64,000 bases of DNA from Vitrella brassicaformis CCMP3155 (taxonomy: Eukaryota; Protista; Chromerida), in NCBI GenBank assembly GCA_001179505.1, contig CDMY01000209.1:102705-166704 (forward strand), in the 5' to 3' direction. The translations under genes and the position numbers were made by a program. Below are positions 14,654 to 17,600 of the stretch, in pieces. Every line of letters starts with the position of its first letter. Position 1 is the stretch's first letter. Below the pieces are notes generated by a model. It saw only the letters and a program-made list of their open reading frames with translations. It was not told where the DNA came from and ran no database searches.

Positions 14654-17600
14654 ATGGCGACGGAAGGGGAGACGAACAATGAGAGGAAGGCGTCGACTGA
14701 GGACGCTGTGCCAGGCTACTCGTCGACGCCCCTGCTCGTGGGCGTGGTCGTTTCGATCATCCTCATGATCGGCGCTCTAGTCGGCCTGGGACTCGCTGCC
14801 CAGGAGCCTGCAGGTGGGCGAACCAGCCTGGCACAGATGAGTCGTGTTGGGGGGCGTGGGCGGGTGTGCCGTGCTGGGCTGAGCTGGGCTAGGAAGCAGG
14901 CAGACGTAGTAGATCTGCTTGCTAACGGCATGCCACTCTCGTGTGTGTGTGTGTGTATGTGTGTGTGTGTGTGTTGGTGGGTGAATGTCAGATCGTATGT
15001 GGGCCTTCCCGCAGGCGAGCATCGAGGTTCCGAATGTGGCCGATGACCGACCAGTCACACGTAAGGAAGGATGGTTCACGCGCACCGCACCTGTTGACTG
15101 ACTGAGTGACTGAGTGATGGATTGATGGGTGGCCTGCATCTCTCCCTCTGTCTGTGTGCAGTTCCCCATGTGGCGCAGTTCGCTGGACTGGCCACTGGCT
15201 TCTTCGGCACGGCAGCCATCTGCTTCTACGCCTACTACGTGCTCAAGCAGCCGATGGGTAAATGATACACACCCACCACCCCACCACCCTCTCACAACTG
15301 CGGGTGTTTTCACAGGCAACCAGTTGATGGTCGAGATAGCGCACAGCATCAAGGCGGGCGCCAAGGCGTTCCTTTTCACCGAGTACATCTACCTCTCGGT
15401 GTTTGTGATCGTCATATTCGTCCTCGCCGGCGTCGGCACGGGCAGCAGCGCGGGCGCCTGGGATGGGTGGTGCACCGCCATCTGCTATCTCATCGGGGCC
15501 GCACTCAGCGCCGCTGCGGGATACACCGGAATGATCATCGCCACGGAGGGCAACTCGCGGACCAGTTGGGCCGCATACAAAGTAGGCAGTGCGGGAGGGG
15601 AAGAGATGGGGTGAGTGCATTGAAGGGGGAACATGGCGTGGTGTGATCGGTCGTCCGTCTGTCTGTCAGAGTTTGAGCAACGGGCTGCAAGTGGCGTTCC
15701 GCAGTGGTGCGGTCATGGGGCTGTCCGTCGTGTCGTTCGGAATCATCGGCCTCTCCGCCGTTCTCTTTATTCCCGACAACGTGCGTGATTGACCAACAAC
15801 ACACGGAAACCCCTTCAAGCTCACTCGTGTGTGCGTCTCTCCTTCCAGGGCATCGTGTCCATTGCTGGCTTCTCGGCCGGTGCATCCTCAGTGGCCCTCT
15901 TCGCCCGTGTGGGCGGCGGCATCTACACAAAGGCAGCTGACGGTAATAAGCGCATGATATTAGAGGGCCGGTGCGTCAAACACACGCACTCACTGTCTGT
16001 TTTCCTGTGCAGTGGGTGCCGATCTGGTGGGCAAGGTGGAGGCCGAGATCCCTGAGGATGACCCGCGCAACCCCGCAACCATCGCTGACAATGTCGGCGA
16101 CAACGTTGGCGACGTCGCCGGTTAGTGCACACACACACACACGGGGCCATCGATTCCCTTTTCCCATTCCTGTGCTGTTGGCAATAGGTATGGGGTCTGA
16201 CCTGTTTGAGTCGTTTGTGGGTTCGATTGCGGCTGCGGTGATCCTCGCGGCCCGCCAGAACGACCTGGAAGACTACGCCGACTTCGCCGTGGCCTTCCCC
16301 TTCTGGATCTGCGCCATCGGCATCATCGCGGCCGTCGTCTGCACCGCTTACCTTCGGTGCAACGAAAACTCCAGCATGAACGACGTGAGTGTGTGGGTGG
16401 ACGAGCCCATCCAGTCGACGCACGAGAGAGAAAGGGCTGGATAGCACTCTATCTCTCTTGTCTTGTGTTTGCTTTGTGTGGTCAGTTGTTGAATTCGATG
16501 CGTATGAACGTGGTGGTTTCTGCGGTGCTCATTGTGCTGGGTGTGCTGGCGACGGTGCTCATCTACTTCTACGAATACTACACGCCGTCTAATGCGTGCA
16601 TCCCAGAAGATGGGGAGGCGCTGGGCCGCAACTGCTTCACCATCCAGGCCGCCATCGGCATGTGGGGGTGCGTACTCATCGGACTCGTTGCCGGTGAGCT
16701 GGACCATAGTATAGACATACAGATGCATGCAGGCAAGGAGCGATTTTGCTGTGGGGTGACGTGGTGTGGTTTGGTGGATGGGTTAAGGTATCTTCATTGG
16801 TTGGATCACTGAGTACTTCACGAGCAGTGAGGACCCTCCCACTCGGTCAATTGCCCAGGCCGCTGAGTTCGGTGCCGGACCCGTGATCATCCAGGGCATG
16901 GGCATGGTGAGTTGGGCCTCGAGTGCATGAAGAGGCAGATACGTGTCGGACTCATTTGTGTGTCGCTCTTTTTCGCAGGGCATGTTGTCGACCACTGTGC
17001 CGCTGGTCTTGGTTGTGAGCACCATCATCTCGACCTACAAGATCACCGGCTTCTACGGCACCGCCATCGCCGCCGTGGGCATGCTCTCAACCCTTGGAGT
17101 CACCATGGCCACCGGTATGTATGCGACGTGGGGCCTCTCGAAAGAAGGCATAGCACACCCATCTTTCTCTCTTTGTGCGTGTGTCAACAGACGCGTACGG
17201 CCCCGTGGCTGACAATGCCGGTGGTATCAGTGAGATGGCCGAGCTGCCCGAGTTTGTGCGCGACCGGACCGACCGGCTCGACGCACTTGGAAACACCACT
17301 GCTGCCACTGGTGAGTGAACGACATGTATCCCCACATGAGGTGGATGTCCGCTCACCGGTTTCTCTCGCGCCTTGCTGTGATCAGGTAAGGGTTTCGCCA
17401 ACGGTTCTGCGGTGCTGGCGGCCCTGTCGCTGCTGGCGGCCTTCACGTACGAGGTGAGCAGCGATGAGCAGCCGCCGCAGCAGGCTCTGCTCGACACGAA
17501 GTCGCCCACGCCATACAACGCCTTCGTTATCTCCGAGTGGACCATCTGCGGGTTGCTCATCGGCGCCGTGCTGCCCTTCATCTTCTCAGCATGCACCATG

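Follow-up and report, generated by a model that had tools for sequence, protein, structure and literature searches.

An intron-rich gene of Vitrella brassicaformis for a membrane pyrophosphatase with the K+-dependent, Glu6.53 residue pattern

The stretch of DNA analysed here, 64,000 nucleotides of Vitrella brassicaformis CCMP3155 (contig CDMY01000209.1, positions 102,705 to 166,704; hereafter the window), contains at 14654-18694 of its plus strand a real, expressed, intron-rich eukaryotic gene for a membrane pyrophosphatase (mPPase). The protein combines the residue signature of the K+-dependent subfamily with the glutamate position found in Na+-transporting members of the family, and it belongs to a broad and monophyletic clade of eukaryotic proteins in which pyrophosphate (PPi) may drive the export of Na+.

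The gene and its transcripts

The gene consists of 17 exons separated by GT-AG introns of 58-178 nucleotides, and its coding sequence of 2655 nucleotides specifies 884 amino acids. The model was built by hand from GT-AG sites and the reading frame and was then compared with public RNA runs. In four such runs, from three studies, spliced contigs (2975 and 2946 nucleotides) match the genome with the introns removed and with zero letter differences. Fourteen introns appear as explicit joints in these contigs, all GT..AG; the first intron and the last (18457-18595), which border masked repeats, were placed by contig arithmetic. Microsatellites, (TG)n and (TC)n(TG)n, lie at 14935-14973 in intron 1 and at 18552-18593 in the last intron, and because read mapping masked both, the acceptor of exon 2 and the last intron are missing from the joint table. 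The RNA contigs alone revealed an in-frame exon of 69 nucleotides at 14992-15060; by showing this exon they ruled out a 16-exon model of 861 amino acids in which 14813 was spliced straight to 15162. A candidate exon of 46 nucleotides at 15015-15060 is out of frame. The initial annotation had described the gene as fully intronised, and the 16 spliceosomal GT-AG introns that are removed in the transcripts bear this out. The G+C content of the gene resembles that of the surrounding sequence.

The transcript starts at or before 14553, and the 5' untranslated region covers, at its minimum extent, 14553-14653. No ATG of the transcript precedes the one at 14654, and an in-frame stop codon (TGA) is found upstream of it at 14639. 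Exon 1 (14654-14813) holds this start codon in the context ACAATGG, a hydrophilic N-terminus of 26 amino acids, and an extra transmembrane helix, TM0 (14732-14800). Exon 2 (14992-15060; 23 codons) encodes the loop between TM0 and the first core helix, and it is supported by the joint from 15060 to 15162, by contig arithmetic, and by in-frame translation. Core TM1 is encoded by exon 3 (15162-15257), TM2-TM3 by exon 4 (15316-15581), the joints of which are seen in RNA, and TM4 by exon 5 (15670-15780). In Ballesteros-Weinstein numbering, exon 6 (15849-15942) provides TM5 with Ser5.43 (15885-15887), Arg5.50, and Lys5.58, while exon 7 (16013-16120) provides a cytosolic loop and the start of TM6, with the motifs DVGADLVGK and DNVGDNVGD (Asp6.35, Asp6.39, and Asp6.43). 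The ion-gate part of TM6 (Asp6.50, Glu6.53, Ser6.54, and Gly6.57) and TM7 come from exon 8 (16188-16384), and TM8, a lumenal loop, and TM9 from exon 9 (16486-16693). Exon 10 (16788-16906) precedes exon 11 (16979-17114), which contains TM10-TM11. Exon 12 (17191-17310) carries GNTTAAT with Ala12.46 and ends on the first base of the Gly12.49 codon; exon 13 (17386-17624) supplies the rest of that codon, Lys12.50, and TM12-TM13. Following exon 14 (17694-17779), exon 15 (17844-18258) spans TM14-TM16 and holds Lys16.38 (18148-18150), Asp16.39 (18151-18153), Asn16.46 (18172-18174), and Lys16.50 (18184-18186). Exon 16 (18325-18456) encodes TM17 (18340-18405), an additional helix at the C-terminal end, and the first part of a basic, presumably cytosolic, tail. 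The tail ends in exon 17 (18596-18694), placed by contig arithmetic across the masked repeat, at the TGA stop codon 18692-18694. Transcription of the 3' untranslated region (18695-18900) reaches 18900 or beyond, the mapped stretch ending there.

When protein representatives were searched with exon 15, an exact match came up in P0001, a prokaryote-style open reading frame call of 246 amino acids. It lies on a 4.5-kb metagenome contig (L001; ENA ERZ893784, k147_1002434), the DNA of which is 92% identical to 16918-21691 of the window, across an assembly gap. This level of identity indicates an uncultured close relative of Vitrella; because the genes of the contig were called prokaryote-style, P0001 reads through an intron. 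Identity between the contig and the window is 97.8% in exons, 91.5% in introns, and 92.7% in the 3' untranslated region, and gap columns number 0 in exons and 27 in introns. Among 409 codons there are 24 synonymous and 2 non-synonymous differences, which shows that the gene is under purifying selection. The full-length protein of the gene itself was not among the matches of the homologue searches, two of which were queried with close relatives; either the collection is without a public protein for this gene, or the public model is split or short.

Residue pattern and extra helices

Four of the seven exon pieces scanned score above the cut-off of 29.7 bits for the Pfam family PF03030 (H_PPase), at 63 (exon 4), 33.1, 50.4, and 181.4 bits (exon 15). 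The positions checked in a 90-row alignment were the catalytic, coupling-funnel, and gate positions of Holmes 2019 (PMC6882861) and Li 2016 (PMC5150537). All are occupied as listed there: S5.43, R5.50, K5.58, D6.35, D6.39, D6.43, D6.50, E6.53, S6.54, K12.50, K16.38, D16.39, N16.46, and K16.50. The catalytic and coupling residues (R5.50, K5.58, K12.50, K16.38, D16.39, GGAWDNAKK, and others) are invariant in the alignment.

The gate itself was read directly from the codons. In helix 6, the codons at 16190-16228 are GGT ATG GGG TCT GAC CTG TTT GAG TCG TTT GTG GGT TCG. Asp6.50 is therefore at 16199-16201, Glu6.53 (GAG) at 16208-16210, three residues further on, Ser6.54 at 16211-16213, and Gly6.57 (GGT), seven residues after the Asp, at 16220-16222. 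Helix 12 reads GNTTAATG followed by K, with Ala12.46 (GCT) at 17301-17303; an intron of 75 nucleotides interrupts the codon for Gly12.49 (17310 and 17386-17387), and Lys12.50 (AAG) is at 17388-17390. Both readings agree with those first proposed, namely a Glu three residues after the helix 6 Asp with none at +7, and a helix 12 of the form GNTTAATGK with Ala at 17301-17303 and Gly at +3. When the helix 6 exon is aligned with the Vigna radiata H+-PPase of the PDB (MGSDLFGSYAES), the Glu of the query lies opposite Gly297 and its Gly opposite Glu301, and this alignment yields the assignment of D6.50, E6.53, S6.54, G6.57, A12.46, G12.49, and K12.50. In protein numbering, the gate residues are S247 (5.43), E309 (6.53), S310 (6.54), G313 (6.57), N780 (16.46), and K784 (16.50).

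The combination of Ala12.46 and Gly12.49 (GNTTAATGK) is the signature of the K+-dependent subfamily; rows of the K+-independent subfamily read GNTTKALTK, and the K+-independent H+ pattern of Lys12.46 and Thr12.49 is replaced in Vitrella by Ala and Gly. The Na+-type pattern is present in full, with Glu at 6.53 and none at 6.57 or 5.43, together with Ser6.54, Asn16.46, and Lys16.50. The Flavobacterium johnsoniae-type H+ pattern (Glu5.43 and no helix 6 Glu) is absent, since Vitrella has Ser5.43 and Glu6.53, and the pattern of plant and apicomplexan VP1 (Glu6.57, Gly6.53) is found in the reverse arrangement. The motifs with which the initial annotation had compared the gene do occur in the fetched sequences (DLFGSxAES in plant-type, GNTTKA in K+-independent, and DLYESYCGS in Bacteroidales and Opitutales sequences). 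The flanking motifs that it had taken as a sign of the bacterial Na+ clade, including NPATIADN, proved to be near family-wide and do not tell the clades apart.

The gate pattern is the same in the 39 rows of the eukaryote clade described below, except that three rows have Asp at 16.46 and the apicomplexan Digyalum oweni has Thr at 16.50. Because it is common to all members of this clade, and because the transcripts are identical to the genome, the pattern is not due to chance. Asn16.46 is found in 33 of the 34 rows of the main prokaryotic group and in all rows of two further prokaryotic groups, one Caldilineaceae-like and one named here, after its helix 6 motif, the DLYESYC clade; it is thus normal in prokaryotic E6.53 sequences and does not argue against a Na+ site. 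The Thr of Digyalum, in a helix 16 that reads NILITLM (P0331), stands where all other aligned sequences have Lys, and it represents either a transcriptome error or a real change of the gate.

Hydropathy identifies two helices beyond the 16 of the core. TM0, which precedes core TM1, comprises residues 27-49. TM17, residues 814-835, follows TM16 and is itself followed by a basic stretch in a tail of 49 amino acids. TM17 aligns across nearly the whole eukaryote clade (members include P0331, P0321, P0309, P0012, and P0353); it opens with a conserved W/Y-x-G, is followed by a basic tail, and is absent from the prokaryotic sister sequences and from plant-type sequences. TM0 is present in a 16-row clade around Vitrella and in part of the remaining eukaryote clade; the prokaryotic sisters and the plant-type enzymes are without it. 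In an AlphaFold model of the Digyalum homologue P0331 (pLDDT 87, pTM 0.90) the extra helices are confident, at H15-41 and H781-807, and the model superimposes on 4A01, 5LZQ, and 8B37 (TM-score by target 0.85-0.90); the Vitrella protein has a hydropathy profile that fits this fold. Both termini of the 16-helix enzymes face the lumen or periplasm. One added helix at each end, taken together with these lumenal termini and the positive-inside rule, would place both termini in the cytosol. Consequently, the Vitrella protein is likely to have 18 helices (TM0, the core 16, and TM17) with both of its ends cytosolic, and the basic tail at its C-terminus may serve in sorting or regulation.

Relatives and descent

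The nearest full-length relative is a transcript protein of Digyalum oweni (P0331/P0383), with 62% identity (BLASTP) over 774 amino acids. It is followed by the proteins of Rhodelphis marinus (60%) and R. limneticus (P0328; 58.5%), red algae (Rhodosorus, Porphyridium, Pyropia, Eucheuma, and Timspurckia; 45-49%), diplonemids (Diplonema ambulator and probably Hemistasia; 49-52%), and diatoms (Nitzschia and Cylindrotheca; about 52%). Further relatives are found in Percolomonas, Muranothrix, and the foraminifer Sorites, as well as on numerous contigs of marine metatranscriptomes. Prokaryotic matches, mostly from Chloroflexota, reach about 50% at best. In a genome scan for relatives, the 80 nearest loci came mostly from metagenome-assembled genomes.

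A tree of 90 rows and 684 columns was inferred with IQ-TREE under LG+C20+F+G4 by posterior mean site frequencies, with support given as ultrafast bootstrap / SH-like approximate likelihood ratio. An alignment of exon fragments with full-length relatives had several fragments misplaced and was rebuilt on eight well-placed exons. Typed enzymes (those of T. maritima, M. mazei, C. tetani, and others) stand outside the tree rows, as do the prasinophyte sequences. Vitrella and Digyalum are sisters (100/100), and their grouping with Rhodelphis is weak (83/44); with red algae and diplonemids added, a 16-row clade is obtained (100/100), which is contained in an all-eukaryote clade of 39 rows (100/98). 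The sister of this clade is a group of Caldilineaceae-like Chloroflexota (98/96). Both belong to a 59-row group (100/97) that also holds Dehalococcoidia/SAR202 and the DLYESYC clade, while the plant-type E6.57 clade lies elsewhere. The signature groups of the tree agree with their descriptions in the literature: Flavobacterium-type Bacteroidota have E5.43 with G6.53, plant-type sequences G6.53 with E6.57, and K+-independent sequences K12.46 and T12.49 with E6.53. With groups labelled by signature or taxon proxy in this way, the eukaryote clade has prokaryotic E6.53 sequences as its neighbours and is widely separated from the E6.57, E5.43, and K+-independent groups.

Two constraints were imposed on the tree. 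The first addressed a test set in advance, in which grouping inside the plant/protist H+-PPase clade would refute a Na+ pump; when the query was forced into the plant-type E6.57 clade, the log likelihood (lnL) fell by 238 units and the placement was rejected (approximately unbiased (AU) test, p 2.7e-66). Plant AVP1, the Vigna enzyme (4A01), and apicomplexan VP1 are members of the same family with the same K+ signature and a similar overall similarity, but in addition to this separate placement they have Glu at 6.57, Gly at 6.53, and no TM17. The second constraint, which was chosen after the tree had been seen, forced Vitrella, Digyalum, the diatoms, and Sorites into a clade of stramenopiles, alveolates, and rhizarians (SAR) only; it cost 306 lnL units (p 1e-69), which indicates that the gene tree departs from the species tree. 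The myzozoan copy is tied to those of red algae, Rhodelphis, and diplonemids, and this fits either eukaryote-to-eukaryote transfer (for example from a red-algal plastid ancestor) or old paralogy. The suggestion of a recent lateral gain by this organism, or of an isolated oddity, did not hold up: the nearest relative is an apicomplexan, and the surrounding clade is broad and entirely eukaryotic.

Eukaryotic candidates for Na+-PPases have already been noted in silico, and the Vitrella gene joins this known group. Probable Na+-PPase orthologues were reported in marine prasinophytes and diatoms on the basis of in silico work and a tree, with validation under way (Perez-Castineira and Serrano 2020, PMC7438732), and an editorial states that Na+-PPases occur in marine photosynthetic protists (PMC8034386). 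The prasinophyte proteins (Ostreococcus, Bathycoccus) share the Vitrella signature. So do two proteins of Porphyridium purpureum (P0305 and P0314), which NCBI names 'K(+)-stimulated pyrophosphate-energized sodium pump', and those of the diatoms; these red algal and diatom proteins belong to the eukaryote clade, have TM17, and are about 45-52% identical to the Vitrella protein. In a 2024 review of protozoan mPPases, Vitrella appears only as a species with a H+-PPase (PMC11486809). Together with Digyalum, which has the same layout of TM0, 16 helices, and TM17 but is known from a transcriptome only and differs by its Thr for Lys at 16.50, Vitrella is the first example to which we can point from the chromerid/apicomplexan lineage. 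What is added here is a verified full-length model of an expressed gene, a connection with the apicomplexan lineage, evidence that the clade is broad and monophyletic, and its specific extra helices.

The ion carried

According to the literature, Na+ pumps and K+-dependent H+ pumps are told apart by the position of the Glu, 6.53 in the former and 6.57 in the latter (PMC9408878, PMC5150537); the Na+ site is made of D6.50, E6.53, S6.54, and D/N16.46, and moving the Glu destroys it (PMC5150537, PMC6882861). This rule, the invariant gate in the 39 eukaryotic rows, and the fact that Vitrella carries the residue of the DLYESYC clade in only 3 of the 44 columns that mark that clade favour Na+. On these grounds, the gene probably encodes an mPPase of the K+-dependent type that couples PPi hydrolysis to Na+ export, a reading that we prefer with reserve for both the ion and the K+ dependence. 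More tentatively, and with some doubt as to the whole, the eukaryote clade might consist of true PPi-driven primary Na+ pumps with 18 helices and cytosolic ends, of which the myzozoan copy would have come from a red-algal lineage (for example a plastid endosymbiont) rather than by SAR descent.

The closest guide to mechanism is the Na+-PPase of Thermotoga maritima (4AV3, 5LZQ), which belongs to the same family, probably has the same fold (TM-score by target 0.86-0.90 for the Digyalum model), and shares D6.50, E6.53, S6.54, K16.50, A12.46, and G12.49. It differs in that identity is about 36-38%, in that Thermotoga has Asp at 16.46 where Vitrella has Asn, and in that only Vitrella, known here from sequence alone, has TM0, TM17, the 49-residue tail, and an intron-rich gene. 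By homology with this enzyme, binding of the substrate would close the loop between TM5 and TM6 and push TM12 down. A corkscrew motion of TM6 and TM16 would then form a Na+ site from Asp6.50, Glu6.53, Ser6.54, and Asn16.46 while Lys16.50 swings away; the ion would be released on the far side, and hydrolysis of PPi would follow. K+ would occupy the site left free by Ala12.46. Hydrolysis of cytosolic Mg2-PPi would in this way export Na+ from the cytosol, either over the plasma membrane or into an organelle, and at very low Na+ the protein might carry H+, as bacterial Na+-PPases do.

Several considerations limit confidence in Na+ as the ion. Rhodelphis limneticus, which we take to be a freshwater species, has an orthologue with the same gate pattern; the clade therefore extends beyond marine species, and a simple tie to the sodium of seawater is less convincing. 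The structural evidence comes only from the 62%-identical Digyalum homologue, and the fold does not discriminate between pump types. The functional labels in the tree rest on signatures and taxon proxies, and a literature search turned up no paper in which the function of a eukaryote-clade protein is assayed. According to Strauss 2024 (PMC10897367), selectivity cannot be predicted in all subclasses from any residue pattern, and E6.53 also occurs in dual Na+,H+ pumps and in K+-independent H+ pumps. In Table 1 of Holmes 2019 (PMC6882861) a K+-dependent H+ pump, that of C. hydrogenoformans, is placed under 6.53, an entry that conflicts with the rule on Glu position given by Baykov 2022 (PMC9408878). 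In addition, H+ is transported by Na+ pumps when Na+ is below about 5 mM (cited in PMC10897367). Since dual and some H+ pumps share Glu6.53, sequence cannot fix the ion specificity. The initial annotation had held that K+ dependence together with a Glu three residues after the Asp defines the Na+ or Na+,H+ class, which is too strong in view of these reports (PMC10897367, PMC6882861). Of its proposal of a PPi-driven Na+ pump, the K+-dependent Glu6.53 signature and the distance from the plant-type H+ clade stand, and Na+ pumping itself is an inference.

General similarity does not separate the pump types either. The Vigna H+, Thermotoga Na+, and Pyrobaculum H+ enzymes score about equally in searches of the PDB by similarity and by fold, and exon 15 matches Thermotoga at 123 bits and Vigna at 144 bits. 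All 12 of the NF0019xx PPase models in NCBIfam are named 'sodium-translocating pyrophosphatase', including those that match K+-independent proteins; this uniform naming means that no ion type can be assigned from that scan.

It is unlikely, although a serious case can be made, that the protein pumps H+ only. The geometry of helix 5 would then let Glu6.53 pair with Ser5.43, as in the K+-independent enzyme of Pyrobaculum, and the ion would have been switched after entry into eukaryotes. Selectivity has been ascribed to the interplay of S5.43 and E6.53 and not to the position of the Glu alone (Strauss 2024, PMC10897367), and the K+-dependent H+ pump listed with 6.53 (Holmes 2019 Table 1, PMC6882861) could be a precedent. 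H+ pumping arose from Na+ pumping about four times, an orthologue exists in a freshwater species, and all characterised eukaryotic mPPases are H+ pumps (PMC11593465). However, apart from the C. hydrogenoformans row, the reviewed K+-dependent H+ lineages have moved or lost Glu6.53 (PMC9408878, PMC10897367), and the groups of the tree agree with this; the Vitrella gene lies far from the E6.57 clade, and the gate pattern has been kept in the 39 eukaryotic rows.

A little less likely again is joint transport of Na+ and H+ at physiological Na+ by a dual pump resembling that of Bacteroides vulgatus or the second lineage of Nordbo 2016. Such pumps have the same gate pattern of A12.46, G12.49, and E6.53 (PMC10897367 Table 1). 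The Bacteroides vulgatus-type Na+,H+-PPases are represented in the tree by a taxon proxy, the DLYESYC clade (Bacteroidales, Opitutales, and Fibrobacter), and this clade falls with the eukaryote clade into the one 59-row group (100/97). The second dual-pump lineage reportedly has no simple signature. Set against this, the direct sister of the eukaryote clade is Chloroflexota and not the DLYESYC clade, Vitrella reads DLFESFVG where that clade reads DLYESYCG (in full, DLYESYCGS), and 41 of the 44 columns specific to the clade have another residue in Vitrella.

A recent lateral transfer from bacteria into the alga, or contamination of the assembly, is very improbable: the eukaryote clade as a whole is indeed nested among prokaryotes with Chloroflexota as sister, but 16 spliceosomal introns are removed in the transcripts, the G+C content is that of the surroundings, the Digyalum protein (62%) and then other eukaryotes are closer than the best prokaryotes (about 50%), and the eukaryote-only TM17 is shared. 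That the gene is an inactive relic can be dismissed, since no catalytic or coupling residue has been lost, spliced transcripts exist, and the 24 synonymous changes against 2 non-synonymous ones reflect purifying selection.

Should Na+ export by the Vitrella protein prove true, the protein would represent a type of sodium pump so far undemonstrated among eukaryotes; as late as 2024, specialist papers still treated Na+ transport by mPPases as confined to prokaryotes (PMC11593465). Such a pump, driven by the metabolic by-product PPi, would bear on how marine protists keep cytosolic Na+ low and on the turnover of PPi, and also on Na+ homeostasis in the relatives of apicomplexan parasites, in which the Na+-ATPase ATP4 is a drug target.

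Two minor features of the data concern the locus itself. Some RNA contigs diverge from the genome at the intron positions 15108/15117, 16125/16145, and 18323, and may be unspliced, alternative, or chimeric. Just downstream of the gene, the assembly contains two gaps of exactly 300 N each, at 19956-20255 and 23085-23384.

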